A DNA stretch of 64,000 nt from Aplysia californica (Eukaryota): assembly GCF_000002075.1 (NCBI RefSeq), contig NW_004797413.1:890549-954548 (forward strand). Direction: 5' to 3'. The translations under genes and the position numbers were made by a program. Below are positions 19,001 through 46,600 of this stretch, in pieces; within the stretch, counting starts at the first letter, position 1; each line of letters begins with the position of its first letter. The notes under the pieces are model-generated. The model was not told the DNA's origin, searched no databases, and saw only the letters and a program-made list of their open reading frames with translations.

Positions 19001-22000
19001 ATAAAGTTTCAGCTTGATTCTTGTATGATGCACATAATATGGTAAAAAATCTATTCCTTTTCTTTTTCTCTCTCTCTCTCTCTACCAGGAGACATCAGAG
19101 AGCTGTACAACACGCCCTTCAAGAAAGGCCACATAGCGGCTTTCTCCGAGGATTGTATCGGGGTCAACAAACGCCTCAGTCGACTCACTGTGAGTGCTTG
19201 TAGTCTTGTGGAACTCGCCTCATCCTTCCACTTCTCCTTCTCCTCCTTCTCCTACGCTTTCTACTTCTTCTCCTCCTCCTCCTCCTCCTCCTCCTCTTTT
19301 GCCTCTTCCTTNNNNNNNNNNNNNNNNNNNNNNNNNNNNNNNNNNNNNNNNNNNNNNNNNNNNNNNNNNNNNNNNNNNNNNNNNNNNNNNNNNNNNNNNN
19401 NNNNNNNNNNNNNNNNNNNNNNNNNNNNNNNNNNNNNNNNNNNNNNNNNNNNNNNNNNNNNNNNNNNNTGACCAGATTTCGGAGTTTTGCCTTTAAACAA
19501 CCTATTTCCCCCTCTTCTTCTAATACAGCTGTACCTGCTATAGTGGGGCCACCTGTTCAACACAATCATCTGTAAAAATCACCATTTCTCAGTTGCTTCC
19601 TTTTGAACTCTTTGAACACCATCGGATGCTGGGAGCGTCTGGTGGTAATAACCCTGTTCCCCATCGGATGCTGGGACGGTCCAGTACTAGTGACAACTGT
19701 TTCGTTTTATTTAGTGCTAGCTTTTGCTTATTTTTCAGAACTATTCCCGAACCAAGTTTTTTTTGTAATGACTAAGACTTTGTTTTCGCTATCTAGAAGT
19801 TTAGAGGCAAGCTTTTGGGGTTATAATGAGACATAGTGCACTAGGTGCAGGTGACTGTAGAAAAAAACTTCGGGAAACGGGGGAAAAACCTCAGGGCTTA
19901 AAGAGTTAAAAGCCCTGAGGTTGGGTTTTTTTTTGGTCGAGTATCTCTGTCCGTCTGCTGGGACATTGTATATCTCTCGGCCCAGCTTAGTCCTGACAGG
20001 CATAGTTAAAGCAACCTGCCTCTTAACCTTTTGAGCCCTGGCCACCGCTACACACAGTGTTTACATCATAGGGCATTACTGATTTTTTAAATTAACTTTC
20101 TGAATTAAATGCTAGTAAAGACAAGGACTACCCTTAGTGGGATATGAATATGATTCTGACGATTATATAAATGTGAGACTTACAAAAGTGTGAATCGCTC
20201 AGGAGCTCAGGCAGAGGGGTACAGTAGCCACAGGAGGTCAGAGTTCAAAGGGTTAAATTACCTTAATTTTGTTGATGGGGGTGTCAAATACGTTCAATTA
20301 CAATTTTTCTCATGTCTGCTCTTGTTTGCACAGAATGTGTATGCAGAGTATCTGGACTTCAAGAATCCCCACATCAAGGAGATGAAGATGAAGGCGACGG
20401 CGTGTTCGTTCAACACGGGTGTGTTTGTGACGGACCTGAGGGAGTGGGACAAGCTCAACATCACGGCACAGCTAGAGTACTGGATGGAGCTCAACACTAA
20501 GTAAGGACAGAGATTGGTAGAAGGATGGAAACTGAGATATATAAACAAAGATCTGAGCAAAGATAGAAACAAAGATATAACAACATTCTGAGAAAAAAAA
20601 TAGAAACTAAGATACAGAACAAAGTTCTGAGTAAAGGTAGAAACAAAGATTGAAACAAAGATGCATTACAAAGATATGAACGAAGACAGAAACAAAGAAA
20701 TAACAAAGTTCTGAGCAAAGGTATAAACAAAGATCTGGACTGAATTAAAATCTGAACAATTTCTAAGCAAACATTTGATTAAAGATATTTTTGTGATCTG
20801 TAGTGACTGTAAGATGTTGTGGTGATGTGGAGTGACTGTTGTTGTGGTGTGCTCTCGTGACGTGATGAGTACTGACTATCATTATGACGCGTACACATTT
20901 ATACTGTGATGGACTCACTTTGTGCCTTTAACACACACTCACACACACACACACACACACACGCACGCACACACACACAGGTGGAAGTATATTTCTGTTA
21001 TTCTCTCTCCCCAGGGAAGAGGTGTACGGCAACGAGAGAGGGGGTGGAGGGTCCCAGCCTCCCATGATGATTGTTTTCTACAACAAGTTCTCCGCCATTG
21101 ACCCCATGTGGCACGTGCGCTATCTGGGTAAGGCAGCTCATTTTTTTAGTAGAGGTTTTACGGCGCTCGAAACTGCATAAGGTCATATCAGGCGCCAGAA
21201 GATTAGAGGTGCTACAAGAGAGTAACAAACAAAGATTGGAGATGTTACATGAGAGTAAAAAACATAAAGATTGGAGGTGTTACATGAGAGTAAAAAACAT
21301 AAAGATTGGAGGTGTTACATGAGAGTAACAAACATAAAGATTAAAGGTGTTACATGAGAGTAACAAACATAAAGATTGGAGGTTTTACATGAGAGTAACA
21401 AACATAAAGATTAAAGGTGTTACATGAGAGTAACAAACATAAAGGCAGCTCAATATATAAGAATAAGTTCGCCATAAGCAGAAATGTAACAACTTGTCTT
21501 GAGATGGGTTTGTTTTACCCTTTTGTTTTAGTTTTAGTTTAGTAAGATTCTTTTGGCGCTCACATCTACATAAGGTCGTATGAGCATGCACTCTTGGTAG
21601 ATTCTTTGGGTGTCTTTTCGGGTGTCTACAAAGCATCCGTTTTAAAGAGTACAAAGTGGGTGGTTGGCGGGTGCTCTGGTGTGGTTTGCTTCTTCTTTCC
21701 TGTCAAACATCTATCGTCGTTATATCCCCTTCTTCTTTTTTATGTTTGTTACTCTCTTGTAAAACCTCTAATCTTCTGGCGCTCATATGACCTTATGCAG
21801 TTGCGAGTGCCGTAAAACCTTTACTAAAACTAAACTAAAAGAGTACAATTAATTTCGTCTCACTTTGTCTTTTCTTGCGTCAAATTTTGTGTTGTTATTT
21901 CCATCATCATATTTTGTGTCTTCTTGTTTTTTCTTATGCCAAGTTGAGTGTTTTGTCTCATCTTGTCTTTTGTCATGTCGATTCTTTTCTTATTTCGGTT

Positions 22001-22516
22001 TTGTAATGTGTTTGTCTTGTCTTATCTTTTTTCGCGCCAATTGGTCGCTTTCGAGCACAAGGGGGCTATCCCGAAAAATGCTGTTTTGAGAAAATCGAAG
22101 GTACAGTTTTTGCCCCTTGTTCAGTTTCTTTAAAAGACAAGTCGACTTTTCTTTATAACCAAACAAATATACACACCAACAATGAAACCAAACTTCTCCT
22201 ATAGGTAGGGCAATGCCCACATTTGGTGTAGGTCAAGATTTCTGGACATCCCCGAAATCTGGGTTAGCCCGCTTGTCCTTGAAAGCGACCAATTTGTGTA
22301 TAATCTCCATCGTCACGTTTTGCTTTGTTTCCATCCCTTCCCATAGGCTGGACATCCGGCACCAGCTACAGCAAGAAGTTTGTGGCCAAGGCCAAACTGT
22401 TGCACTGGAACGGGAAGTTCAAGCCGTGGGGTCGAGTCTCGCAGCACCACGACGTCTGGGACCGTTACTTCTTGCCTGACCCCGGCAATCGTTTCAAGCC
22501 CATGAGGAGGACATAA
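13004..22516 (+). CDS. GLT8D1: Glycosyltransferase family 8 domain-containing protein (GLT8D1/GLT8D2-like), 361 aa, 10 coding exons
   Basis: Exons: 13004-13028, 13864-13971, 14608-14706, 15277-15373, 16079-16196, 17678-17765, 19089-19189, 20334-20500, 21015-21127, 22347-22516. All introns GT-AG, phases consistent, total 1086 nt. The protein has an N-terminal signal anchor (MGILSTRKVGFLLAFVWIGTLCYIWL), LNYARYYLPRLFP, a DxD motif (IIFLDDDCIVQGDI), ACSFNTGVFV, QPPMMIVFY, IDPMWHVRYLG and LLHWNGKFKPW. These match vertebrate GLT8D1 motifs as I recall them. Confidence 0.93.
16322..16681 (-). mobile_element. Full-length tRNA-derived SINE (Deu/Nin-like central domain, (ATT)n tail)
   Basis: Reverse complement of 58302-58649. 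A box GTGGCCTAGCGG, B box GGTTCGAATCCC, core tgtgtccttgggaaaggcacttt...cacccaggtgggaatgggtacc, and an ATT-repeat tail. Confidence 0.85.
17303..17686. repeat. ~36-bp minisatellite (~11 units) built from the GLT8D1 exon-6 splice acceptor
   Basis: Unit tctcctgttatgtaatgtcttatttcAG|ctaaacta. The last unit supplies the real acceptor (ttatttcag|CTGAACTAT at 17678). Confidence 0.9.
18420..19025. repeat. ~303-bp tandem duplication, each unit containing a small TIR element
   Basis: Units start at ~18420 and ~18723. Each has ctgtcccc...cggggacag inverted ends over ~180 bp. Confidence 0.8.
21200..21443. repeat. 35-bp minisatellite (~7 units) inside a dispersed retroelement 3' end
   Basis: Unit aaagattggaggtgttacatgagagtaacaaacat. 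It is flanked by the family tail (minus strand) at 21147-21200. Confidence 0.85.
21655..21840 (+). mobile_element. Representative copy of an abundant ~180-bp retroelement 3'-end repeat
   Basis: gtgggtggttggcgggtgctctggtgtggtttgcttc...gttactctcttgtaa...ggcgctcatatgaccttatgcagttgcgagtgccgtaaaac...actaaaac. More than 12 copies, e.g. ~3367, 6978, 8503, 10700, 17782, 36085, 46992, 47591, 55435, 55686, 59248. The stem-loop plus short-repeat tail resembles a LINE (I/Nimb-like) 3' end. Confidence 0.8.
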
Positions 22517-24702: not shown

Positions 24703-27700
24703 GTGTGTACAGTTATAGTGGAATGTATTGTTTACATTTTTTGTGGTCTTTGATTTGTGCAAATATATATACATATATATTTTTTGCGTTCTCCATGAAT
24801 CTCAAAGGTGCTCATGTGTAAATCAAATGGAATGTATGCATGAATTGTTTTATCAAAGCTTTAATGATGGAATGTATGGATTTCATCACTGCTCTCTAGT
24901 CGATGTCTTTTGTCCGCTGAACTCCCTTCATTGACAAAAAGATGGGTGTGGGAAAACAATGAGCAGGCTGCACCAATATAATCCATATTTAACTTTAAAA
25001 TTAAAAGTAGGGCCCCCAAAATATCGTCCTGTAGACTTCAATTGGCCCACAGGCTGCGAATTTGATACCCCTGGTGTAAAAGGAGGAGCGAGGAAGGAGA
25101 GTTGGTTGTGTTGTTCACAGGTTGAGTGTAGCAGAATCTTTTGACTGATTGATTTGTGTACTGATTGAAATTGTTATATTTAGTTTGTGTGGTTGAGATC
25201 TGGTTTAGACATATCCTAGCACTGTTGACCAATAATGAAAGTTTTTCTTTACTACCGACTTAAATGCATTCTTCATCATCATGTGACGATTTGGATGGTT
25301 TGTCGCTTTTTTTCAAATTCTGCGCTCAGTCTTCTATTTTTATTGACTGATCTGACTCAGACTGTATTAATTGAGATTTGGTGAGAGAGATAGAGAGGGA
25401 GGAGGAGGAGAGAAGGAGAAGGGGAGAGAGAGAGAGGGATGGAAAGGGAAAAAGAATAGATATATTTATATAACCTTGATGATTTTCTAAACAGCTATGA
25501 GTGGAATTGTATGTTCACTTTACAAGTGTAAGTCACAAAATACTCCAACTAAAGCTACTCACAATGTGCGACATACGACTGAGCAAGGTTACTTGAAGAT
25601 TTTTCTGCATAGCTATACATAAATGTTCCAAATGAGAGTTCCCTTTTCTCAATAATCATATCAAAACAGTATTTTGTTGAAGTTTATTTGGGGTTACATA
25701 AACTCATGGTCCGTATGCATAAATTTAGTGCTCGAGTAAAGGACTCAAGTTAATACCACGATTGTTTTAAATCTCCGATAAGAGGACAGTTCAGGGTAAT
25801 GTGGATTGTGTTTGTGGGTGAGGAAAAGTGGGGTGGGGGCGGGGAGATAGAAAGCTGGCACTGTTTTTCAGAATGACACATATCACGTATGATTTATTGT
25901 GTAAGTGTCATAGACTCCATCTGTTTGTGTTTGTGTTAGTTTCCTGATGATCTTCTGCCATGTTGGAAACATCTTGAGTCTCAGCTCTGTGTGTGTGTGT
26001 GTGTGTGTGCCTGAATCATGAACAGGGTGTTGTGTGTTTGGTTCAACCAAAGACTGTACATTACTTATACAATTTTTTCAGTTGCTTTTGTCTGAAATTC
26101 TTTGGCTTCAGAGGTGTCCCAAAAAATGTGAATCTCCTCGCTGTTGCAAAGTTCACCATTTGATCACAAAGAAAATGCGAGTCATCTGTGTTTTCATTTT
26201 AAAGCGTTTGGTGCAGTTTATAAGATAGCACACTCATGCTCCGTGATAGCGACTGCTAGAAATAGAATGATGTGTAGGTTTGGAAATGTTTTAATTTGAA
26301 CTTTGTTGTGATTCTCTTGTAACTTTTCTCGTATAACTTCTGCTACGAAGCGAACACTTTGTGTAACTTGTAAACTTTGTGTGTTTGGAAGTGTGAGGGA
26401 TGGTTTGCAAAAATGGCTTCATCGTGATTGCTCAATGAAGGTGCTCGGGGGGTACAGTACTATATAGACCTTGTGTTTTTGAGTTCTTTATCTCTTGGTA
26501 TTTCTCTATAAATGACTTGGATTTGACATACTGTGTTTGATTTCTCATTTTGTTGTTTAGTTTTAGTAGAGCAACTGCGTAAGGTCATTTGAGCGCCAAA
26601 CATTTTGTTGTGAATTGCTTGCGCTGACATTAGTCCGTTTAAGACATATATAGTTTGTTTACCCACTGCATAAAAACAAGGAAAAAACCCGAAAACAATT
26701 AAACTTTATTCCGCCAGGCACTCGGAGACTGTGACATAAGGAAGTTGGGGTTGAAAAAGTGGCCACGTAAATTAAAGGATTTATGGTTGTAATGACTAGA
26801 CGTGAGTATATTTTTTTGTGTATGGAGAAAAATTTGAAACTGATTTACTCTATCAACACATAGATCCATAAGACTTGACAAGTGGCCATCTCACAGGAGA
26901 ACCTGTATGGGCCAACAGAGGAACTGAGCAGGACGGCCCAGTACAATGTGATAGATACTGGTCTTCAAGTGTGATGCGATCAAGAAGAAGAAGAAGAGAA
27001 TTATTTTTAGTTTACAAAAGTAACTAATTGAGCAAAGTGCTAGACTTGTAGTATGGATGTGCACTCTCTGAGATCTACTCAGTCTTTGTTGGGACCCAGT
27101 CTATCATTTTGAGGAAAGGATGGCTATTTTTAGAAAAATTCTATAGTTCATTTTTGTTTACGCTTTGCTGTGACAATCCAATAGTGGTAATAGTTCCATG
27201 GAGCCTAAGACAAAAATAACATTTCCTGCAAACAAATTTAATCAGTGTTTGGGAAAATATTCCACTAACACAAATGACAAACACAGGCTATGCGTTTTAG
27301 ACATTATCATTTTTATTATCTTTCTTATAATAAACCACTCTTGCAGGAAAACCTACGGTACTTGAATACCCATGAACTGGGTGATAAAATAAAACAATTC
27401 ACCGGGATGAATAGTGAAATATGACGAAGATGGTAAAAAGTGTGATTTTTATATTTTACTTTTATGAAACCAAAACAATTTGTCTTGTATTATGGAATTC
27501 AAAAAGAGAGAAACAAATTTTAGCCCCTCTTTAACTCTTTTTGTACTTTGCTTTCTCACCTGAAGTCAGAATTGCTGAAAGCAAAGTCTGATGTACTGGT
27601 GTATATTAATGAAACAGTTAAATGTCTTGAAAGTGAGTCCTATTTTCATCAACAATGTTCCCACAATTTCAAAGACCTTTCTTTTTTTCTTGGCAAGAAA

Positions 27701-28390
27701 AACTGGCACAGTTCCTTGCTCCGTGTAAGTATTGTTATGTCCCATAGTCACAGATCTACGCACAGATTGAGTTGAGCAAGGGCCTTGGTCACATTCATTA
27801 GTCGTTGTAAAGTATTGTTCCCCTGAGACAAATGAAATTTATGAGATAGGGAATTTTTCATGTACAAAGTAGGAAACAGAATAGAAGATATAATGTATGT
27901 ATACTTACCAACACATCTATTCAAAAAACAGCTTAAAAGCTTGGTTAAGCCCTCGTACACATATGCACTTAAGCATTTATGCTCACATATGCACTCATAT
28001 ATACATCATGGCATTCCCTATGATAAAAGTTATACAGAGAGACAGAAATGTAAAAATTGTAGAAGTTTTACACCCCCATCAGGATAATTCATGGCCAACC
28101 CGGGCTTGGAGCAATTTAGCATCCCGAAAGACATAATATATATATGGAGATATTCGATAAAAACTCCTCACATGGGAATCAAACTCACATCTTCAGCATG
28201 TAAAAACAGGAAAATGCCTCACCATTACCCCACGGATGCTGGTATGGTACGGTAGACAACATGGCATTGTTGAAAAGAATAAAAGAAAAAAAGTCGACCA
28301 ACCAAAATAAAGGAATAAAACCTGGATAGAAAATCTCTAGAGTGAGAATCATCATCCAGGCAAGTGAGATCTTTCTGTGTTTGGACATTT

Positions 28391-28466
28391 CTCTCCTATA
28401 GGCACATCCAGAAGCAGACATCGGAACTTGATTTCATCTGCTTCTATCATAAACAGGACAGAAAAG
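28391..28466 (-). promoter_or_regulatory. Eukaryotic SECIS element (type II) in the SelL 3' UTR
   Basis: RNA: CUUUUCUGU CCUGUUU A UGAU AGAAGCAGAU G AA AUC AAGUUCC GAU GUCUGCUUCU GGAU GUGCCU AUAGGAGAG. It has a 9-bp helix I, an AUGAU/GGAU kink-turn core, a 10-bp helix II, unpaired apical AA and a mini-stem. It lies ~760 nt after the stop codon. Folded by eye. Confidence 0.9.
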
Positions 28467-29226
28467 TCAGGGGAAATTTGAAAGTAACAATATTTGACTA
28501 GTAAGTAGGCAAAAGGAAGGTTGCCTAATTTTAAAAAATGTAATGCATTTATTTTTCTCATTTTTGAAAATGGAAAGAGTCCACATTTGGATCTATTATG
28601 GGAAAATAAATATTAACCCTATCCATACGTCGTGTTTTACTATTGCATCCATAAGACGTGGGGAGCTCTGTGCCACCACTTTCCAAAGAGGATATTTACT
28701 CGTTAATCCGATCCATACACTCTGCATAGCAGTCTGTCAAAATGATTTTTTGAAAAACACTTAAAGTTTCAAAGAGATCTTCGTACTAAAAGTAGTAGAA
28801 GTATTCTAAAATGTGAAGACGGGGTACAAAACGACCCCAGGGCATACGGATAGGGTTAGGGTACATTCGTAGAAAGACAGTGAACTACGAGAGTGACAAT
28901 GAAAAATCTGGCTAATTCAAAGAAAATCAGGCAGTCTCCCCATTTTTGGTTTCAGTGGACTTCACTGTTCCTTGGTATTGAAAAAAAAAATAAATAGAGC
29001 ACTCAACGTTGTGAAGGATATTGGCTGTACAAGTAAGCATGCTCTTTTTATGAATGGATCGAAGAAACATTTTAAAGATATATGTTGAAGAATGACATCT
29101 GTTTTTTCTGAAACAAGATCGAAATCTGTCAATTCATCTCCACTTACAGCTTCATCATCGTTACAGTCAAATTTTCCCATGCACAAACACATAAAACACA
29201 CACACAGAAAATCAGATACTAAGACA

Positions 29227-32200
29227 CTACTTGTCTTGTGTTTGAACTTTGCTTGTGGAAGGAAGAGAATCTGGGTCATTGACTGTCATGGCCGCCAGTA
29301 GTTGATCCACCGATGGGCGATCAGACGAGGTTTTGCTCGGGTATGACAGTTTGATCACACCCTGGCGGTCTAGGACAAAGTCTCCACCCATCTGAAAGTG
29401 AAAAGGCATAACAGCTGTGGTACATGATAATGGCAGGTAAAAATGAGATACTTGACAGGAAAAGCTAAAAATAGTTTTATATGCCAGAGCCTCTTTTGTT
29501 GTAAATTCTCTGTCATGATATAAACTATAATAAACCACTAGTTACAACAAATATTTCAAATAGATGTAAAAAAAACAACCCAAAAACCAGTGACTGAATT
29601 CCAGAATGACTGGAGTAGACTGGCCAATCTGGTTAAATATTAACACTTTGCCCCCCACACCGGACGCCAATCGGCGTGAGCAATAAGTCATCTCTTTCTC
29701 CCACTGGACACCGTAGGCGACAGTAATAATATAGCAAAAAAGCCCCTGGCATAATCGGATTGTTTTGAGAGAAGTGTGTTGTTCACTTCCTCTGTTTTGT
29801 CATATCACCGATGGAAACATTATGAGGCCTTACAGGTGTTGAGCTCAACAATACAAAGTCCAACTTGCTGTAACAACCACTTGTCCAAGACAATCATCTA
29901 CAAATAACCACTTTCCAAATTGATTTTTTTTTTAATTATAAGAACACTGTCCAAGATGTTCATCTGTCTAAGACAACCAAACACTTTTCTCCTCCACAGT
30001 TGGAGGCTGTCTTCAACAATTTAGACTAATACCATACGGTACCTAAAAGATCAAGGGGAAAACCGTGTGGAACATGGAGAAGAATTACAGAAATTGATGT
30101 ACAAAAAAGTAGGAAGACATGGAATAACATCAAGAGGCTAGCCTAAGAGAGAGAAAGGTGGAAAGTGTTTGTCCGTGGCATTTAACTCATTCGCTACGCC
30201 GAGCCGTGGGGGGCGGCACGGCTAGAGTGCCGTCAGTATGCTAAGCCGCCCCCGGCGGCTCGAGAACCGACGTTCAATTTGAGCTTGGTTTCTATTCCAA
30301 TCCACATATCCATGTTAAAATAAAGGTCACAATATAAAGTTGACTTCCGGGTCAAGCGTTTCCATCGAAAATCGGAAGTTTTGATTCAGTTTTGAAACAC
30401 GATTTCGAAGTTTATGCGACATTGTTTTATCGCGAAGCCCAAATTATAGCCCAGACACCAGTCTTAGTACTTTTACACAACAAAATGTATCATTATTTTG
30501 CCCACTAAAGAAATGTAGGACTCTTCTTTATAATATTGATACTACTGGACTCAAATTGCCAGTGCACTGTAATTGAGAAATCAATATTTTTGAATGCTAG
30601 ATCTAGGCCTAGATCTAAATAGTCAAAATATTTTTTCTCCCCAAAATCACTATTTTTTGTGAATTTACTCAAAAAGTACCACCCTAGACATGTATAGGTT
30701 TATTCCAAATACAATTCTGGATAATTCCATATAAGATACAAGTGTTTTTTTCTGCTTAGGATCCTTTTTTCAAAATTATTTTAAAAATTATTTTTTTTTC
30801 AATATCGGAGGTTATGATCCAAATGTACAAATATTATGGAATGTATGTAAATAACTGCTCATTTTTCAATATTTTCCTGTTCTATATACAGTTATGGTTA
30901 TTTTGATGTATCATTTGACTAGGTGCAAACATATTTTTTGAGTTTCATCTGAGATTATAAATTTTTTGTTTTCAAATTTTATCCGCAGCCAATCACAATT
31001 GTGTTGCATAATCGCCTCTTACAGGAACCAAAGTTGAAAAATACACAAATAAATAATGCAGATGTATTCTACAAACCATACTAAAAATGTTGGTATATAA
31101 TATGTTGATATTTATTTGAATTTATGACCCCCAAGACCTGTGAACTGCGCACTAGTCATCATCTCATTTCGCCCTCCCGAAAAAAATTCGTCCACAAGCC
31201 GAAAATAATACGTAGCGAATGAGTTAACTTGATGCAGGGTGAGAAAGGCAATATGATGATGATGACCATACTTAGGTGTAAGCTTACCTGCTGGGGATCA
31301 TCATGAACATTTTCAAAGGGTTTGGGCAGTTCCCGACCAGCCACAAGTTGTTCAGCGTAGTAGACCATGCATGCAATGCTCCACACCTGAGGGGGCGAGA
31401 GATCAGAGACCGTTAGAAACTACCAATCAAAGACCAAGTGAGAACTGTTGATCAGAGATCATGTGAGAGAACAAGAGATCATAGATCATAGACCACCATG
31501 TGAGAAATTGTAGATCCCAAGAAACTAAATTCAGAGAGAGAAGGGGGAGGAGGAGTTCCAATTTATGTATTTTCCATGTCATAAAAAACTTTAGGATTTT
31601 TGTTTCTAATTTAGAGAAAGAATTTTGAAGAGCAGTGTCCACATTTCAACATATATACAGTAACACTGTCGCAGTGTTGATGGCTGAGGTAAATCTGTGA
31701 ACCTCTCAGTGTGTAGACCTGTCCATAGTTAAAACTGTTGTCATTTACACAACAAAAATTATCTTGCTTGGCTAGTTTTGTCTTGGGGGAGGGGGGGGGG
31801 GATGAGAGGTGGGACTGGGAACAAGTGCATGCAGATGACAGTCATTTTTAAAAAAGTGATGGGAATATATACATAGTTGAATTTTTTCAAGATGGCCACC
31901 CATTGTTGAGGCAAAAAGTAGTTGCCTAAGACTGGTAGACGGCTTGCACTGTGCCATCATAATACAGAAAAAAACACAGATGGGAAAGTGGGAAGCAGTT
32001 ATTTGTACAGGTCTTAGGCAGGTGGTCATAAGAGCAGACTCAACTTATCTGATTTAAAAGATGTAACAAAGACATCATTCCTTGAATCTGGTGAATAAAG
32101 ACTTAGCTTATTTGAGTACTTACTTTATAAACAGATCTACTTAAACCGAATGCTTGATATATCTGAGGACATACAAGAAAAACTAAATTAAAAAACATTT

Positions 32201-35200
32201 AAGCAATTGGAGCTTTACATTTTATCTTTCTCTGCTTTCAGAAATGCTTTTCTAACCATTATACTGTAAGCACATTAACTTAATTAACTTAAGCACCTTC
32301 TTAGTAGAAATGCTCTGACAAGTGAGATTTATGATCCTTATCTTTATTAAAGCACCACAAAAACAAGTACAATAAAATATGTAGCTGTCCGTTAAATCAT
32401 AAAATAGAAGAAAAGAAAAAACTGACCACATTTCTGTGGAGTCTGGAGGGTGCGCTGAGCTTCCGGACTCAGTATTTTGGGAAGTTTGTTCCTAATTTTC
32501 ACACATTTCTAATGTTCTATATATCTAGTATCTTTATTTTACAGCCTATGATAATGCATTCTACCTTCCCAACCCTTCCCCCCATCCCTTTCCCCTTCTT
32601 TCTCAGGAAAAATCAATCTATCATCTAGTTCTTTTCCAAGAATAAAAATGGTCATAAGAGTGGTGACATTCATTTTCTCCATAAACAGCCAACTTACCGT
32701 CCTCTTGCCATCCAAAACCATGTCATACGGACACTGCGTTTCTTCCAGCCATTTCAGAGCTCCATGACGCTCTCCAAAAGACACCATCAAAATTCTGCCT
32801 CCGGCTTCTGAGATTTCTGCCTGTATGAACAAAAAAAAAGAATGAACTCCACAGTTTCCTACTGTAAGAAAGGCCTGATAAAAAAACTGAGAACACAAAG
32901 TTCTTCTGTAGAAAAGGTCTGGTTATTATAGAATGAAAACATCGCCAAAACAGCCACAGCTAAGACAGAAAAGGAATTTCTCTTGTACCTATTGATCACT
33001 AGACAGAGCAAAGATTTGGTCTCCTGACAACTGCCATAACATTGGGAAATCTATGCTTTTTTTAAAAAGATATTATATACATGAAAAGAAAAACTAAACC
33101 TGTTAGCAAACAGAAAGTCAAACATAGACTTGGAACAGGGAAACATACAGTTGAACCTGCTTTAACTTCTAATCTCCCGCAAGCCGCTCCCAGCAGCACA
33201 CGGTTGGAACCGGTCGGAACCGCCGTGCCGACGAGCCGCTGACAAGGCTGAGAGAACTATCAAAATAGGTCGACTTGTTTTGATTTAATGACCCAATTAG
33301 TGATGTTTTGTGTCATTTTTAGATTTAGTACCAAATAAGGGCCCCGGCGTTGTAGGTTTACCCCCCTCTCAGATAAAGAGTTAATAACCACCTGTCCCTG
33401 ACCTGTACATACAACCACTTCCCATTCCTGCCTCATGTGTTTTTTACATTATATTGTCACTATCCAAGAAGGAAAAGAAATCAAATGAGGTAGTGCTTGA
33501 TGAAGCCCACGTGGGACGCTCAATGTTAAAAACAATCAGGAAACGACAAATGCAGTTTTTGGGACACATAAATAGACATAAGGGTCTTGAACATCTAGCT
33601 CTCACTGGCAAAACTGAGGGCAAGCAAGGCAGGGGTAGGCCCAGAACAACATACTTAGGGAACCTAAACAAATGGGTAACAGGGAAAGATCAGGTAAATG
33701 TAGCTTTTTTGAGAGCATCCGAGTAAAGGAAGGAATGGAGAACCATGATTGCCGATGTCTGTCGCAGATTTGGCACTGGATGATGATGATCCAAGAAGAC
33801 CACCTGTCTACGATGACCACTTTTCTCTTCGACAATGGGTGGTTGCCTTAGACACAAGTTCTACTTTTGTTTGTTTTAGTAAGGTTTTACGGCGCTGGCA
33901 ACTGCATACGGTCATATGAGCGCCAAGGGGTGGATGTCAACAGAGAAGTCTAAATGGGGAATCAGGCTTACTCAACTGCATAGGCTACAACTTACTCCAA
34001 AAAAAAGATAAAAACCTGGCACGTACACAAAAAACAGAAAACTTAACTGACCTGTCTAGAAACAATTGCACGCACATGGTCTCGTCAGGGCAATCAGGCA
34101 AAGTGTCTCAGCAGCACAAGCACGAGAAACTGCTGATCCATCAAGAAATCCTCAAATGTTGTAGGCAGCTCCGTGCAAGCATTGACCAGGCTGTCTGAGA
34201 TGGGACCCACATCTCCCTCGCGTAACGCAGGGCCCCCTGTTGAAGCAAGACCTTTGTCCACTCCCATGAGAAAGTCATCCCACTCTCGCTGTGAAGTAGA
34301 ATACCAGCACTTAATGAACATAGTCAACATTTCGGGAAGAACATTTAGGAAAACATTTTTTTTATCTCTGTCAACTTTTGGTAACAGGAGCAATGACAAG
34401 AGCATTCTGACTTAATATCCGTTGAACGCACAGAAATTCACAGGAAAAATTAAGTCTGATAAATATAAAAACTGAAGCCAATAATGTGGCAAGTAGCCCT
34501 CAAGCAAACAAAAGCCTATTTGACTGCAATAACATTTGATGAGGATGAAACCTAACAAGTTAACAACCTTCTCTCTTCCAGTATCATAGATCAACACGCG
34601 TACAGTAAAAAAAAATTGAGATAAAAAAATAAAAATGGTGAAAAACAAAAAACAAAACAAAAAAAATTACCTCAACATCAAGAAGCTCATCAAACGCTTC
34701 TCTCATTTTTCCATCTCTGTAAAAGGAAGACTTGTGTTAGAACAGGGAAAAACATCACAGCATAATAATCAATATTAGTAGGAAAAATAGAATTCAGCAA
34801 CAAAAATTACTTACTATTGCGGTACAAAAGGGGAAGTCTGCTAAAAAAAAATTCTTTAAACCACCATGTTTCCCTATTGGATTTCTCTGGTATGGATGCT
34901 TCATGGTTTTATACAATGATGGCTGAAACTTTAAAGACACACCAGCCACTAACTTTTAAAGTATCAAAAACACACAAACAGACAACATTGACCTTTCGTC
35001 ACTGAAATTCATACTCTACTCTATTCTTATATCATAAAAGGCAAGAAAAAAATACCCATAAAGATGAAACGAAATACCTATCCAGAAAGAGATTCCCCCT
35101 CAAAAACAATTAACAAACATATATAAGAAAAAATCAGAGCTTTCATTACAATGACAAAAAGAAGATAAGTTACTAAAGAAACGAACTTGCTACTGGTCTC

Positions 35201-36782
35201 AACAGAAGAACAGCCTAACAACACGAAGAATAACTTTGGCCATATTCGCATCTTGCAAAGTGAGGTTACCAGACAAGGAACTGTTTACATTTTTACATCA
35301 ACAACCACCGGTGTGTTCATGTGGGAGAAGAAGATCGCTTATTACATCAGTGCTTCGCATCTAACAGTACTGAAATAAAGTCAGTGACAGAGCTTCGAGA
35401 TTAAAGATCTTGGGGTGTGTCCAAGAGAAAAAATAAAAATAAATAAATGTGAAATCTCGTTATTTGTGAAATATTTTGTACATGCATGCCATTGTAAGTG
35501 TAAGCAGAAGGTATCTTTAATTTTTCTTTTTTCACTTTGGAAGGGAGGCGTGATTGGACAAAACTGGCATGACTCTAGTTCTGTACATACCTGAAGTGGC
35601 GACTCGCTTTCCTCTCAAATTCATCTTTGGACTTTGCTTCAACCCTGGAAAGACAAAACAATATTTTTTCCCTCACTGATAATAATAATGGGCTCAATTG
35701 CTTCCTCCATCTTCACAGAACATTTCAAAGGAGTTACAAAATGATCAATTGACACTTCAATATACAGAAATAATTATTGTGTTGTCGACACGATGAGCCA
35801 AAACATGTATAAAGCTGAGGTCAACTTCCCAGTTCTATCAAATGAGCAACATCCCTCCCCCTCCCCCCTCACTATCCAATAATTATTACAGAGAAAATCG
35901 AAGTAAAAGAGAAAACACATTTCTAGAAAGACTTACTTTTCAAAGGCTTTTTTGTACAGACCCACAATTCGGAAGAGTTTACCAATCTTCTGAGACACAA
36001 AGTCTTCACTGCTGCCTGCAGATTAGAGAGTGACACAATATGAGGACATGTACAGAGTCATATACTTCTAAATTAAGTAAGTGTTTTACAGCACTTGCAA
36101 CACAAATAGGTCATATAAGTGACGAAAATTAGTGGTATTACTGGACAGTAAGGCGGAGAGATAAGGACCATGAATGTTTGATAGGAAAGAAAGATTGAAC
36201 CACACCAGAGTACCTAATAACCTCCTGTGACCTACAGTAATTATGTACTGAGTCGATATAAGCAGCACTGGCAATAAACTCTCTAAAGAGAGAGTCCCAA
36301 AGTGTTGATTATAAATGATAGGCGATCGTTGCCAAAGTCAATGAATCCATATTAAGTCACTAAAATAATCTTAAATACACATTTCGGGAAATGATATTTT
36401 ATCTTGTGATTGCTGTAGAAAAGTAAAGTACTGCCATGGACAAATGATTTGTACTTCAATTTTGCTGAATATTTATTCAGGCCTAGATCTATATATATCT
36501 TTCATATGAAATTTCCTGCCGACATATTCTTATTCATTATTTCGGAAATTCAGACTTTTATAACAAGCTCCTCATGGTATTTCCACTAAGTAAAAAACAT
36601 CTCTTAAAATTTCTGAATTGTTAGAAAAGCAATAATATGGGTACATGCTAACACTGCATAGTAAAATAAGGCAACTTACTCTGAACATCATTTCTGGCAT
36701 TCCGTATGATCTCCGTGGCAGCATCGGTGACACTCTCTAGAGCAGACAGCAATGCTGCCTGCTTTACCTTGGACAAATCCAT
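29227..36782 (-). CDS. SELENOL: Selenoprotein L (AhpC/thioredoxin-fold protein with UxxU motif), 314 aa, 9 coding exons, two in-frame TGA (Sec) codons
   Basis: Minus-strand exons: 36782-36680, 36015-35937, 35644-35591, 34716-34671, 34288-34052, 32820-32698, 32162-32124, 31386-31288, 29391-29227. All GT-AG, total 945 nt. Protein: MDLSKVKQAA...FVSQKIGKLF...FDELLDVEREWDDFLMGVDKGL...LVLVLLRHFA-U-LP-U-RDHV...GGRILMVSFG...WLEETQCPYDMVLDGKRTIYQAFGL...QMGGDFVLDRQGVIKLSYPSKTSSDRPSVDQLL. These motifs are characteristic of SelL. TGA codons at 34096-34094 and 34087-34085; SECIS in the 3' UTR. Confidence 0.93.
30186..31223. mobile_element. Non-autonomous TTAA-targeting DNA transposon (piggyBac-like)
   Basis: TTAA|CTCATTCGCTACG ... 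CGTAGCGAATGAG|TTAA: perfect 13-bp TIRs with TTAA on both sides. Confidence 0.85.
33450..33790 (+). mobile_element. RTE-clade LINE 3' fragment
   Basis: Translation KSNEVVL...IRKRQMQFLGHINR...GKTEGKQGRGRPRTTYL...WRTMIADV, followed by a (TGA)n tail. Related fragments at ~48560-48680 and at ~30040-30185 plus 31228-31266. Confidence 0.85.
34052..34288 (-). CDS. SELENOL: SelL exon 5 carrying the UxxU motif (Sec159, Sec162)
   Basis: Acceptor tcacag|CGA at 34288, donor CAG|gtcagt at 34052. The 237-nt exon is phase 0/0 and reads ...AGA CAC TTT GCC TGA TTG CCC TGA CGA GAC CAT GTG... Confidence 0.92.
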
Positions 36783-37216
36783 GGATGGGGAAAATCCTGA
36801 TAGGAAAGAGGAATGTAAATAGACAGGTACTTAGAAAAAAAAACTTTAAGTGGGATTTGTTAGGACTGCCAGTACTGTAGTCTCTGCTTAAGGTCCTGAT
36901 GCTTGGGAGTAAGAAAATGTCAGAACTTCGACGAATGTATGGGATCTTTTCATATTCATCAGGGCAAGAATCCAAGGAGAATCATGGTCAGGCCCACAAT
37001 CGGTAAAATGATCTCAGTTTCCTTTGAAAGAAACTGATGTGGCCCATAGATGGGTATGACTTCTGGAAAGCAAAGAGCTGTTAACCTTGATTGCCAACCA
37101 CAATGGCATCACGCCATTTACACTTTTCATCTTGATCTAATTGTGAGTCTCAAGATAACACATGGCATAAAATCAGTTGGTTTAACAATGTATTTCAATA
37201 CAACTAAATTAAATAA

Positions 37217-38935
37217 AGGCTATTGTTAGGGGACCGTACGCCCCAATAGCGCTTGGCGCTAGGGGACCGTACGCCCCCATAGTGTTTGGCGCTAGGGGAC
37301 CGTATGCCCTACCTGCGCTAAGGCATGGTGTTACGGGACCATACACAGATATGCACGCATCTGGACTTTGTGCAAAAATACTGGAGGAAAACGGCCAGTT
37401 TAATGAAGCTCCTGACGTAAGGAGTTATTACAAGGAGAATGTTTAAAATATCTGAATACGATTGTGAGGTATCCGTTGCAGTGGGTGAACCAGAATTTGA
37501 AATTTGCTCACGTCTGCACCCACGTTGTTGCTATATATGTCAGTAAAAGAAATCAAAGAGAGAGGGAGAGAAAGAGAGNNNNNNNNNNNNNNNNNNNNNN
37601 NNNNNNNNNNNNNNNNNNNNNNNNNNNNNNNNNNNNNNNNNNNNNNNNNNNNNNNNNNNNNNNNNNNNNNNNNNNNNNNNNNNNNNNNNNNNNNNNNNNN
37701 NNNNNNNNNNNNNNNNNNNNNNNNNNNNNNNNNNNNNNNNNNNNNNTGTGTGAAAAACAGACAGAAAGGAAGTGAGAAAGAAAGAAAGAAAGTAAGAAAG
37801 TAAGAAGGAGCGGGAGAGAGAGAGAGGGAGACAAAGTGTGAGTATGTGTGTTTGTGTGTGTGTGTGTCTGTGTGTTAAAGAGAGAGAGAGAGAGAGAGAT
37901 GAGAGGGGGGGGGCTTGAGAAAAAGAGAGAGATAAATAGATTTACACAAAGGAAATGTTTCGGAGAAAAATGAGTAGGATAATAGTGTGTGTGTTCAGGC
38001 GCATTCTGCGGGCAGACATGAGTACATTTTAAAGCTTTGCGACCTGAAATAAATAGGCCCCTAAGCCCCATTTAATGACGCTCGTAAACGCCAGAAAATT
38101 ACTCACTTTTGCATGAGAGAACACGCCTGAGCACGCATTCAGTCTTGATAGCGCGCAAGACGCAAGATCAACTCACATTCAGTAACAATAACAATAACAT
38201 GAAAAGAAAGGAAAAAGAAGACAGCTTGGAAAAAGTAGATAAAAAGCAAAGCAAACTTGACAGAACGACGGGTCGTGAACTAAGCACAGACGAATTAAAG
38301 TTTATTTGCAAGCGCATTACATATAATATTACACGCCTGTCCATATTAATTTAATAAAACAACGTTAGTATAACTGGACTACTTTTGCGCGCAGGTGTAG
38401 TGTAACTATAGTGCGGTCAAAAATTCGTGGCGCAACTTTTCCTCAAATATCTCTTTAACGGGAGCAAAGTCACCCATACTTTGCACAGCAGTTGGTATTA
38501 AAATTTTTTAAAACTGAATCATATTTTTCCTCAACAATTGAGGCTCGATCAAAAAAATGTTCTTCATAAATGTATATAAAATACTAGGCATATAAATCTC
38601 CATCACGCGAAAAATGTGATTGTTCATAGCACTTCCCGCTTCTCGCACACATTTTACGCATGGCCTACGTCATAGCTACTGGATACCTCACAATCTTATT
38701 CAGATATTTAAACATTCTCCTAGTAATAATTCCTTACGTCAGGAGCTTCGTTAAACTGGCCGTTTTCCTCCAGTATTTTTGCAAAGTCCAGATGCATGCA
38801 TATCTGTGTACGGTCCCGTAACACCACGCCTTAGCGCAGGGAGGACATACGGTCCCCTAGCGCCAAACGCTATAGGGGCGTACGGTCCCCTAGCGCCAAA
38901 TGCTATTGGGGTGTACGGTCCCCTAACAATAGCCT
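37217..38935. mobile_element. Non-autonomous PIF/Harbinger-like transposon with ~260-bp TIRs
   Basis: TAA|AGGCTATTGTTAGGGGACCGTAC... and ...GTACGGTCCCCTAACAATAGCCT|TAA: 3-bp TAA TSD. The long inverted arms (37217-~37475 and ~38681-38935) contain 33-bp subterminal repeats. Confidence 0.85.
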
Positions 38936-38944
38936 TAAATAAAA

Positions 38945-39543
38945 GGAAGAGGCTAGCCGTACTTAATGACGGCTAGACTGGCAGTCTAGCCGTACTTAAG
39001 TACGGCTAGACTCACAGTCTAGCCGTACTTATTCTTAATATGATGGCTAGACTGACCATTTACAAAAAATAGGCCTACTGAATTGTAAATATACATTTTT
39101 AGTGTGCAGTACCTAAAGTATTTGTATTTGAGACAAAACCAGGTTCCTTAATGACAGTGCATGTATTTTAAACCTCCTGTTTTCTAATGTAAATAGGGCC
39201 TAAGATAAGTACGGCTAGACTGGCAGTCTAGCCGTACTTAAGTACGGGTAGACAGCCAGGCTAGCCGTACTTAAGGACGGCTAGACTGTCAGGCTAGCCG
39301 TACTTAATATTGATGGCTGAATTGTAAATGAAAATTTTAGTTTGCAATGCCTAAAGTATTTGTATTTCAGACAAAACCAAAACGTGCCTTACTGACTTGC
39401 ATGTATTTGAACCTGAATAATTACTAGATCTAGATCTAATGAGACCTGTGTACTTAACAGGCTTGAGTCGATTGGGCCAAACCTAGATCTAAGTATGGCT
39501 AGACTGGCAGTCTAGCCGTACTTAAGTACGGCTAGCCACTTCG
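38945..39543. mobile_element. MULE (Mutator)-like MITE, copy 1
   Basis: Ends GGAAGAGGCTAGCCGTACTTAA / TTAAGTACGGCTAGCCACTTCG. 9-bp TSD taaataaaa at 38936-38944 and 39544-39552. Many internal palindromic CTAGCCGTACTTAAGTACGGCTAG units. Confidence 0.9.
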
Positions 39544-39879: not shown

Positions 39880-40095
39880 AGAATCTAGATCTATGGAATA
39901 CTATACTACTATACTAGATCTAGATCTAGATTCTAGATCTAGATCTAGATCTAGATATTAGCTGTTTAGATTTCAGAGTATTTTTTTACACGAGCAATAG
40001 ATCTAGATCTAGAATCTAGATCTAGATCTAGAATCTAGAATCTAGAATCTAGATTAGATCTAGATCTAGAATTAGATCTAGAAATCTAGATCTAG
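39880..40095. repeat. (TCTAGA/AGATCT)n palindromic microsatellite cluster
   Basis: Dense agatctagatctag runs. Smaller clusters at ~2020-2350, ~9210-9260 and ~11980-12330. Confidence 0.9.
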
Positions 40096-40299
40096 TGCAT
40101 GACGGTTCGACACGACGTCTCACTCAACTCACATACAGTCACCAAATGATTTGCAAGTTCTCTGCTGTCACTCCACCAAGCCACAGAGATACATCATTCA
40201 GTGCGTCAGAGCCTTTTTTCAATATTTTTGCAGAGCAGACTTTGCCATCATACACGTCCTTAGTCCTGTCTAATAAGTCTTTTTCGTGTATCATTCACA

Positions 40300-42093: not shown

Positions 42094-43618
42094 ATATAAT
42101 ATATGCCCTCAGTTATGATAGTGATAGTTTAAATCATAGATTAGCCTAAACAGTTAATATTAATATTTTCCCTGATTATCAGCATAGGTGTGTTGCATTG
42201 CTGCTGATATTCAGTGATGTGTACCCTTTTTTCTGTCTCAACACTCAACTTTGGCTTTGGCAATGCAACTTAAAGTAGACTGAACAGGAATGTTTTGACA
42301 ACCGAGGATAAAAGGCTTTAAGGGGTGACTGTACAAGTTGGCAAATCACAAGTTCAGTTATAAAGAAATATACCAGTACAACAGATATTATATAATCATA
42401 TGGAAAGAAAAACAAGCCAACTTGATAGATTGTATGACTTTTATAAAACAATGCAAAAAATTCCAAACCTTGAAATTTAACATCATGGTCAAAGCCTAGA
42501 AAAGTAAGCAAAATGAAATTGAATTGACATAAAACTGACCAATTTTTTTCAGCTAACATCAATAATTTCACCTTTATTTTGTTATTGATTGTCTCCAGCA
42601 GCCCAATATAATCCTTTCTTTTCTTGTGTGAAAGTTTTCAAATTACTCGGAATACATTTATTATATAATCCAGGTTTTGTGGGGCAATGGTAGCTTTTTG
42701 CGCCTGGAAGGACTAGGCTAGATTAGAACTAAAACCCCCTTGAAACAAAAGAGATCCAGTCTCATCAAGATCATAGATTTCAAATATGATGTTTCTATTT
42801 CAGTTGCAGACAATATCCCTGATCAACAATTGAAATTGAATTATAAATGCCATACATTTGTTGTATATAAATTATAAAGTCCTGAGTTAGAATCAGCTGA
42901 TTTGATGCCATAATTCATACATCATATAAGAAGGTCACTTGTTGACTCTATTTATGCCACACATCACATGTAGTGAAGGGGTTAATAACTTTGCTGCTTT
43001 GAGCACTCACACAGAGTAAATGTGGCCTTTTAAAAAACTTGTACACAATGTCTAAGGCTGACACTAACTTCCTGCTGGCAATAACTATGTGCTGGAGCAC
43101 CCTAAATAGCTGAGTGGGTTAAGATTGAGTGCAACCTAGTTTGTCTTGCAATCACTAACTTGCCTTGGACATTTTTTCTGTGTGAAACGTTGAAGTTAAG
43201 CCCAAATTCAATTCAAACATACACTTTTGACACCTTTGTTTTGAAAGATGATAGTGTTTCCAAACTTTTTCTATGGTATCTGTTTTCTCAAAATGACTTT
43301 TACTAATTTTCAGCTGTAATATACTCCCTTTGTTTTAGTTTTCGAAAATTTGGAAAAGATTTTGGGATAAAATCCTCAGGGATTTGGAAATAGAAAAAAA
43401 AGCTCACTTTTGTAAAATAACAATGGCATTTTAGACTTAATGGGATTTTAGATGGCCCTATAGGTTACAAATCATTGAGCAAGTGTTTTGTTCCTGTGTG
43501 CTGTTGGCATCGCTGACCGATTATTACGCCACAGCGCCAGAAGAGAGAGAGAGTAAATGATCGTTCACGTTCTTTTTTCTTGTCCCCTTTTGTGCAGCCT
43601 TAGTGGGATATTGACTGC

Positions 43619-46600
43619 ATGAATCCCCAACGGAGCTCAACGACTTCTGTAGGTGTGGACAGCTCTCCCACGGAGAGGACCGGACTAATGAGTAACCTGA
43701 CAGGCGGGGAGTGGGCGGGGGAGAGTGGGAACTTCTCTCCGGTCCGCCGCTACTCTGCCGCGGACGATGAGGCCACGACGGTGCCAGAGGTACAGCAGGC
43801 TGTGTGTGTGTTCGTGCGTGTGTTGGTGGGGGGGGGGGGGGGTGGGTTGTTTGTTCGTGTGTGTGTTTCTGTGGGTGGGTGTACGCATGCGTGTGTGTGT
43901 GTTGCATCTCAGCTCAGTGTCTGCTTATCCTTCACGTTGACTGTTTCATTTACTTTTTGATCTAGTATTTTTTATTTAGAATTGTTTGATTACACTACTA
44001 TTTTTCCCATTATGTTCTGTTCTCACAACTGGCAGTCCCTTCTTTTAAATTGTTTCCTTTTACTCTACTCTTCCTATTCATTCTCCCTTTTCACTTTTTT
44101 GGTATACATTTCGACTCAAAACCAAAGAGCTAATCTTATAAGAATCTTTTCTTTCTCTTTTTTTGTTTGTTTGTTCCACATACGAGAACTCAAGGGTAGT
44201 GAACTGTAGGTTATTCAACACCCAATGAAGCTGATTTTTGTATGTATAATAACGTGCTTTTTTTTCTCAAATCAAGAGGGTTTTATCGTTCCGCTGTCAG
44301 ACCGCAGTTTTTGAAGATGCTTTTTAAAGATGGGTATTCGTGCTGATGAGAGTCTCTGCAGTTTTATAAGACCTATTTTTTTATAAGTTCTGTGAAACTT
44401 AAAAAACTTTTTTTTAAACTAAGGTGGGGGGGTCAAAGTTTGTATTTGTATTTTAACAAGTAATTCTCCCCCCTCCCTCTTTCATCCCCCTGCTTCAGAC
44501 ATCAGTGGTGACCCCCTCGACCAACAGCACAACAAACCAGCAGCCGCAAAGTCAGAGAACGCGGCGCGGCGAAGGGTCTCAAAATAGATCTGACGGTGAT
44601 GGAGCGGCGGCCACCCGTGGTGGCGGTGCCCAGCCAGCTGCTGCTGCGAGGCAGGAGGCGGGGAGAGGGAGCGGAGAGGCGGTGTCGGGGCAGCAGGAAG
44701 AGGAGGACGACGGGGAAGAGACGCTTCTGTACGGGGCCAAGCACGTCATCATGCTGTTTGTCCCCGTCACGCTGTGTATGGTGGTGGTGGTCGCGACCAT
44801 CAGTTCCATCACGTACTACACCACGAAGGGAACCTATTTGTAAGTTGTTCACGCCGCGCTAGCTCTGGCCCTTTTTTTTTCTTTTTTCCTTCTCTGCTGC
44901 AGAAGTCGCTATCTGTTTTTGTTTTTTTTCTTCCATACTTTAGTTATCTTGTCTTTTAACTTGATAATAGTTGGGTTATGCGTGTGTATTTCTTGTCTGT
45001 ACATTCCATACCACAACAAAGTTGGGTTATTGTGGTGTATATTTCCTGTCAGTACATTCTTTTCCATATTAAGAGTTGGGCTGTGTATGTGTGTCTTCTC
45101 CATGTGTGCAAGCTAAAAAAAAACTTTTGGGACAAGAGTTGGGTTATGTGTGTGTATTTCCCCAGCATGTACAAGTGTTGGGTTATTTGTGTGTATACTG
45201 TATTTCCCCAGTCTGTACAAGTGTTGGGTTATTTGTGTGTATACTGTATTTCCCCAGTCTGTACAAGTGTTGGGTTATGTGTGTGTATTTCCCCAGTCTG
45301 TACAAGTGTTGGGTTATGTGTGTGTATTTCCCCAGTCTGTACAAGTGTTGGGTTATGTGTGTGTATTTCCCCAGCCTGTACAAGTGTTTGGTTATGTGTG
45401 TGTATACTGTATTTCCCCAGTCTGTACAAAGAGTTGGGTTATGTATGTGTATACTGTATTTCCCCAGTCTGTACAAGTGTTGGGTTATGTGTGTGTATAC
45501 TGTATTTCCGCAGTCTGTACACCCCATTCCATGACAAGTGTTAGGTAATGTGTGTGTATTTTCGCTGTCTGTACACAAGTTGGGTTATGTGTGTGTATAC
45601 TGTATTTCTCCAGCCTGTACTAGTGTTAGGTTATGTGTGTGTATTTCCGCAGCCTGTACACAAGTTGGCTTATGTGTGAGCATTTCCGCAGTCTGTACAA
45701 GTGTTAGGTTATGTGTGTGTATTTCCGCAGCCTGTACACACGTGTTGGGTTATGTGTGTGTATTTCCGCAGTCTGTTCCACTGTTGTACCTCTGTTTCAT
45801 GACTTTATGTTGGGTTATGTATGTGTATACTGTATTTCCCCGGCGTGTACACAAGTTGGGTTATGTATGTGTATACTGTATTTCCCCGCGACCAAGCTGT
45901 GGCAGTCTATGGCTTTATGTTGGGTTATATATGTGTATACTGTATTTCCCCAGTCTGTACACAAGTTGGGTTATGTGTATGTATACTGTATTTCCCCGCG
46001 ACCAAGCTGTGGCAGTCTATGGCTTTCTGTTGGGTTATGTGTGTGTATACTGTATTTCCGCAGCCTGTACACCCCGTTCCACGACAAGACGGAAGACACC
46101 GGGACCAAGCTGTGGCAGTCTATGGCCAACGCCCTCATCCTGCTGGGCGCTATCATCGTCATGACCATCGTTCTCCTGCTCCTCTACAAGTACGAGTGCT
46201 ACAAGGTCAGGAACAAACTATAAATAGAAACAGCAAATTGTTTTTCGTTCTCCTGCCCCTCTACAAGTATGAGTGCTACAATAGTTCTTTTTTTTTTTCC
46301 TATGAAACATCTGTTTTCCTTATCTCTCTCCTCCTTCTTTTCTTTGTATGTTACTCTCTAGTAACAGATCTAATCTTTCATCTGTGGCACTTATGTGATC
46401 TCACTCTGTTGCAAGTGCTGATCTTATTTAGTTCACAGGTATAAACTGCTTTTAAATGTAAAAAACTCCAAAGAACTTGTTGACTTAAGAAAAAGCATAT
46501 TTCGTGTTTGTGTGTGTGTGCATGTGTGTACGTGGTGAAACACCAAACCAATGTGCGAGGGTCTGGACAATAAAGAGGTATCTTATCTTATCAGGTATGG

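Follow-up and report, generated by a model that had tools for sequence, protein, structure and literature searches.

A selenoprotein L gene with two in-frame UGA codons in Aplysia californica, truncated at the first UGA in RefSeq

The stretch of Aplysia californica DNA analysed here (the window; 64,000 nt of contig NW_004797413.1) harbors a gene for selenoprotein L (SELENOL) that occupies positions 36782-29227 of the minus strand with nine coding exons. There is little doubt that it is an intact single gene, both UGA codons of which would be decoded as selenocysteine (Sec) via a SECIS element; its product is most likely an oxidoreductase. The gene is an orthologue of SELENOL and an ordinary member of a known family; neither a new mechanism nor a new family is involved. 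Its recognition corrects the annotation: the 158-aa product in RefSeq is devoid of the active site, and the same cut occurs in nearly every family entry that was retrieved. It also documents an intact SELENOL in gastropods and bivalves alike, the introns of which are conserved.

Apart from exon 5, the coding exons were identified by eye, and a script confirmed them (Table 1). All eight introns have GT-AG boundaries, pyrimidine tracts, and matching phases, and the spliced frame of 945 nt encodes 314 aa followed by TAG, with stop codons only at positions 159 (TGA), 162 (TGA), and 315 (TAG). Exon 5 is preceded by AG, reads LVLVLLRHFA-TGA-TTG-CCC-TGA-CGA-GAC-CAT-GTG across the motif, and is followed by GT, which yields the protein motif RHFA-U-LP-U-RDH with U159 and U162. 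A possible 51-nt exon in intron 6 (region 32477-32427, by eye) was dropped; the homologues have no such insert. SELENOL is a single-copy gene in the Aplysia genome, and other matches to PF13911 are located on different contigs. Exons 1-5 agree letter for letter with the RefSeq entry LOC101856259 (XP_005097021.3 and two more accessions), an 'uncharacterized' protein of 158 aa that ends at the first TGA; this identity independently supports junctions 1-4 and the first TGA.

Much of this had been anticipated in a preliminary description of the locus. Its claim that the open reading frame appears to break at RHFA while the frame continues through TGA-TTG-CCC-TGA to a GT donor is borne out by exon 5, and the four exons on either side, the length of 314 aa, and the positions of both U residues were reproduced exactly by script. 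It had also predicted that gene finders would truncate or split the gene, which is what XP_005097021.3 and the split homologues illustrate. Only the count of nine junctions needs revision: nine coding exons have eight junctions, and a ninth would require an untranslated first exon. Such an exon is probable, given the acceptor just upstream of the ATG.

Table 1. Coordinates of SELENOL and its transcript features in the window.
Feature	Position	Strand	Remarks
Pyrimidine tract and CAG acceptor	36797..36830	-	15 nt before ATG; candidate donors at 38106 and 38176
Coding exon 1	36680..36782	-	ATG at 36782; residues 1-34; helical N-terminal bundle begins; identical to RefSeq protein 1-34; donor shared with Plakobranchus
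Coding exon 2	35937..36015	-	Residues 35-60; splice script, mollusc comparison, RefSeq identity
Coding exon 3	35591..35644	-	Residues 61-78; RefSeq protein identical; too short for tblastn matches
Coding exon 4	34671..34716	-	Residues 79-94; splice script, mollusc comparison, RefSeq identity
Coding exon 5	34052..34288	-	237 nt; residues 95-173; end of helix bundle, first peroxiredoxin-like strands, UxxU
TGA codon 159, first Sec	34094..34096	-	TGA in 10/10 homologues
TGA codon 162, second Sec	34085..34087	-	TGA in 10/10 homologues
Coding exon 6	32698..32820	-	Residues 174-214; AhpC/TSA-like; Cys203, conserved in most homologues
Coding exon 7	32124..32162	-	Residues 215-227; equal 39-nt exon in four molluscs
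Coding exon 8	31288..31386	-	Residues 228-260; homologue and splice comparison
Coding exon 9	29227..29391	-	Residues 261-314; TAG stop; runs on into 3' UTR
AATAAA hexamer	28548..28553	-	Between stop codon and SECIS; candidate poly(A) signal by sequence
SECIS element	28394..28458	-	AUGA/GA core, 11-bp helix II, AAA apical bulge, short extra helix (form 2)
First AATAAA downstream of SECIS	27312..27317	-	Candidate poly(A) signal; would give a 3' UTR of ~1.9 kb

The same truncation pervades the databases. The 'selenoprotein L' entries of sharks and coelacanth are cut at the first TGA, gene callers split homologous contigs into two genes, and RHFA is the C-terminus of 69 of the 75 proteins collected. 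The errors in public models of SelL are systematic. Most of these models stop at the first UGA, and the motif is missing from both full-length fish models: the one from gar is short of precisely four residues, U-L-P-U, and the one from wrasse omits the entire motif region.

Homologues were searched exon by exon or with database proteins as queries. A single-sequence homologue search returned nothing beyond its own query; when the 64 residues that precede the first TGA served as query, 14 relatives were recovered, nearly all of which end at the equivalent residue. Many of the proteins recovered by a profile search bear the name selenoprotein L (sharks, rays, coelacanth, Plakobranchus); others are from amphioxus, sea urchin, barnacle, Artemia, and sponge. 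Together with the similarity of the N-terminal half to that of coelacanth SelL (29% identity, E 8e-13), these matches uphold the proposed identity of the gene as selenoprotein L.

The DNA of ten homologous loci was read, namely those of Patella, Plakobranchus, Solemya, Mactra, and Apostichopus and five intronless transcript-like contigs. The alignment of orthologues at both U positions had been set earlier as a check, and TGA-x-x-TGA is present in all ten loci, with synonymous variation in the surrounding codons; judged from these sequences, such conservation is far beyond chance. It supports, together with the SECIS element of Table 1, the notion of a complete unit of two Sec codons plus SECIS. 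Conservation extends past the TGAs: exons 6-9 are 54-80% identical to the two closest contigs and 33-77% identical to fish, the full-length models of gar and wrasse match exons 5-9, and Cys203 is common to four of the five homologous transcripts and both fish proteins. The readthrough frames of the transcript-like contigs comprise 299-303 aa, and four of them could be matched exon by exon, in order, to the Aplysia gene. Intron positions are common to Aplysia, Patella, Plakobranchus, Solemya, and Mactra, and, a few exceptions aside, the other molluscs have AG/GT sites at the boundaries of exons 5-9, including those of the 39-nt exon. The SelL of the sea cucumber Apostichopus japonicus (contig L018, near 11893) has a divergent motif, RHSQ-U-PP-U, with both TGAs kept, and its intron pattern around the motif differs.

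The protein consists of two parts. Residues 1-111 are predicted to form a bundle of three long helices (pLDDT 87), which matches a 'Selenoprotein L' cluster in the Atlas (TM 0.92). Otherwise the N-terminal model resembles only three-helix bundles of a generic kind (syntaxin Habc, spectrin, BAG). Their Z of up to 9.2 is below what is meaningful for helical bundles, and no function was drawn from them; a weak Pfam match to PDCD7 (E 0.06) was rejected. A sequence search of the PDB gave no match. In the C-terminal half, exon 6 weakly matches AhpC-TSA_2 and AhpC-TSA in Pfam, the homologous C-terminal halves match AhpC-TSA_2 with E 1e-11 to 1e-15, and positions 9-104 of the AhpC/TSA profile span the UxxU motif, which we take to lie at the position of the CxxC of the fold. 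The C-terminal half of a full-length structure model of the gar protein was poor (pLDDT < 50, no Foldseek match), so that the fold assignment rests on Pfam and on the Atlas features (0.93 for a peroxiredoxin-like domain).

A SECIS element is located ~770 nt past the TAG stop. It matches the full Rfam model SECIS_1 with 30 bits (E 0.016), below the gathering score of 35 bits, and the homologous elements likewise score under this threshold. Its fold has a z of -3.2, with none of 200 shuffles equally stable; if the 3.2 kb that follow the stop are shuffled, a simple SECIS pattern is expected 0.01 times. The element shares 77% identity over 56 nt with the SECIS carried by a homologous metatranscriptome contig (L010). 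SECIS-like elements follow the stop in six homologues (L010, L013, L014, L016, L017, and L021); they have 9-10 helix II pairs and differing sequences, and helix II is retained through changed pairs. Pairs in this set were anchored on the core by script, as MAFFT misaligned the set. The decoding machinery is also present in the Aplysia genome, with tRNA-Sec (anticodon TCA), SepSecS, and eEFSec. The match to domain 4 of eEFSec has its last part twice, ~2 kb apart (G000:C194:133384-137046), which reflects either a duplicated exon or an assembly artefact.

The truncated entries could be taken at face value, as two separate products or genes: a helical protein of 158 aa that ends at the first TGA and an AhpC/TSA-like reading frame downstream. 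RefSeq lists the former, gene callers divide the homologues accordingly, and the N-terminal half folds on its own in the prediction. This view is very unlikely to be correct, because the stop is TGA and never TAA or TAG in 11 of 11 loci, the second TGA three codons on is equally fixed, the break falls within the AhpC/TSA domain, both halves share one frame on single transcript-like contigs, and the downstream SECIS is conserved. Least credible of all is a pseudogene with two nonsense mutations, or a gene whose UGAs are translated as Cys or Trp by leaky readthrough or another code; it has in its favor only that TGA is normally a stop, and it is contradicted by the identical TGAs across molluscs and an echinoderm, the intact splice sites, the single copy, and the presence of SECIS and Sec machinery.

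A different possibility leaves SELENOL real but postulates that many of its transcripts, a substantial share, end through cleavage at the AATAAA (28553) that precedes the SECIS, which would constitute a regulatory switch. An mRNA without SECIS would encode the 158-aa bundle or be degraded, and its existence would be compatible with Sec decoding of the full-length transcript. In 18 probable RNA runs from six studies, 67-77% of the sampled words of region 28300-29391 are present, suggesting that much of the UTR is transcribed if these runs are indeed RNA. The maximum of 0.77 fits a transcript that ends before the SECIS (0.78 is predicted for an end near 28530) but also a polymorphism of ~1%, which alone gives 0.73. 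Moreover, the homologous cDNAs L010, L014, and L017 have no such hexamer before the SECIS, and the Aplysia hexamer is surrounded by A-rich sequence, in which AATAAA often occurs by chance. We regard a substantial share of SECIS-less transcripts as improbable. Slightly more doubtful still is the idea of a stable 158-aa protein, produced by alternative polyadenylation before the SECIS or by selenium-dependent termination at the first UGA, in which the bundle has a function of its own. If this were true, selenium would control the production of two functional proteins from one gene, and the truncated database entries would in part reflect a real product.

With Sec decoding of both UGAs as the preferred explanation, expression of SELENOL can be envisaged as follows. 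In the spliced mRNA, two sense codons would lie between the two in-frame UGAs, and the 3' UTR would contain a single SECIS hairpin. As is standard in eukaryotes, this hairpin would bind SBP2 and recruit eEFSec with Sec-tRNA(UCA), so that both UGAs are read as Sec. The resulting product of 314 aa would combine the three-helix bundle with a peroxiredoxin-like thioredoxin-fold domain that carries U159-L-P-U162, and may act as a two-electron oxidoreductase that cycles between two selenols and an intramolecular diselenide. The fold and the diselenide reported for the family make a selenol/diselenide oxidoreductase the most likely function. For the helix bundle, a role in dimerization or in the binding of a partner or substrate is probable, a guess from its generic fold. 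Under selenium shortage, translation would be expected to terminate at the first UGA and release a fragment of 158 aa; the spliced junctions downstream of this codon would probably leave the mRNA open to nonsense-mediated decay.

Several other elements were noted in the window. A presenilin gene (43600-55400, plus strand; Pfam Presenilin, E 6e-8 on 44505-44840) is divergent from SELENOL, and its introns contain tandem repeats (about 45000-46200 and 53300-54300). Convergent with SELENOL is a glycosyltransferase family 8 gene, GLT8D-like by reading, exons of which lie at 19000-22516 (plus strand; Pfam E 4e-9 and 2e-4). Intron 5 of SELENOL includes a 90-codon reading frame on the plus strand (33454-33726) that has no Pfam match and resembles the C-terminal end of an RTE-type LINE protein. 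Upstream of the ATG, an inverted pair of ~250-nt repeats with short internal tandem units (37200-37450 and 38700-38950, by eye) flanks an N gap and is probably a non-autonomous DNA transposon. Dense runs of TAGATC/TAGAATC at 39880-40100 represent a dispersed simple repeat of the Aplysia genome.

The SelL family was described in 2007 (Shchedrina et al., as cited in PMC3316567, PMC2397514, and PMC13134290). Decoding of both UGAs from one SECIS (PMC3316567) and a diselenide bond (PMC2397514, PMC13134290) have been reported for the family. Members are known from sponge, Trichoplax, Nematostella, Capitella, amphioxus, Ciona, and fishes (PMC3473315, PMC2874816, PMC3316567); the entry for the limpet Lottia is blank in a 2012 survey (PMC3473315, Table 1). 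A literature search found no paper on Aplysia SelL. According to a preprint (bioRxiv 10.1101/2025.10.02.680026), SELENOL is almost confined to aquatic animals and its function is unknown; Aplysia could serve as an invertebrate model for testing it.

Among molluscs, a gastropod member is already named selenoprotein L in GenBank: the 'selenoprotein l' of Plakobranchus ocellatus (GFO25969.1), whose N-terminal half is 46% identical to that of Aplysia. It shares motif, intron positions, and split annotation with the Aplysia gene, as do the homologues of Patella, Mactra, Solemya, and Pomacea. The neighborhood of SELENOL differs, with Fcf1 in Plakobranchus, TMEM160 in Solemya, and the presenilin and glycosyltransferase family 8 genes in Aplysia. 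PRXL2/SelU and other AhpC-TSA_2 (PF13911) proteins resemble Aplysia SelL in their peroxiredoxin-like thioredoxin fold and have an RHF/xxC-type redox motif at the equal position. To our knowledge, however, this motif is CxxC or UxxC in these proteins, not UxxU, and they possess no helical N-terminal bundle. By contrast, Aplysia SelL agrees with known SelL in its two Sec codons two residues apart, one SECIS, a peroxiredoxin-like domain, a length of ~300 aa, a helical N-terminal half homologous to that of named fish SelL, and an aquatic host. At 314 aa, it exceeds the products of mollusc-like homologous transcripts (299-303 aa) by ~11-15 aa because of a C-terminal tail, and its SECIS is farther from the stop (~770 nt versus roughly 20-330 nt in the homologous transcripts); the differences from known SelL are at the lineage level only.
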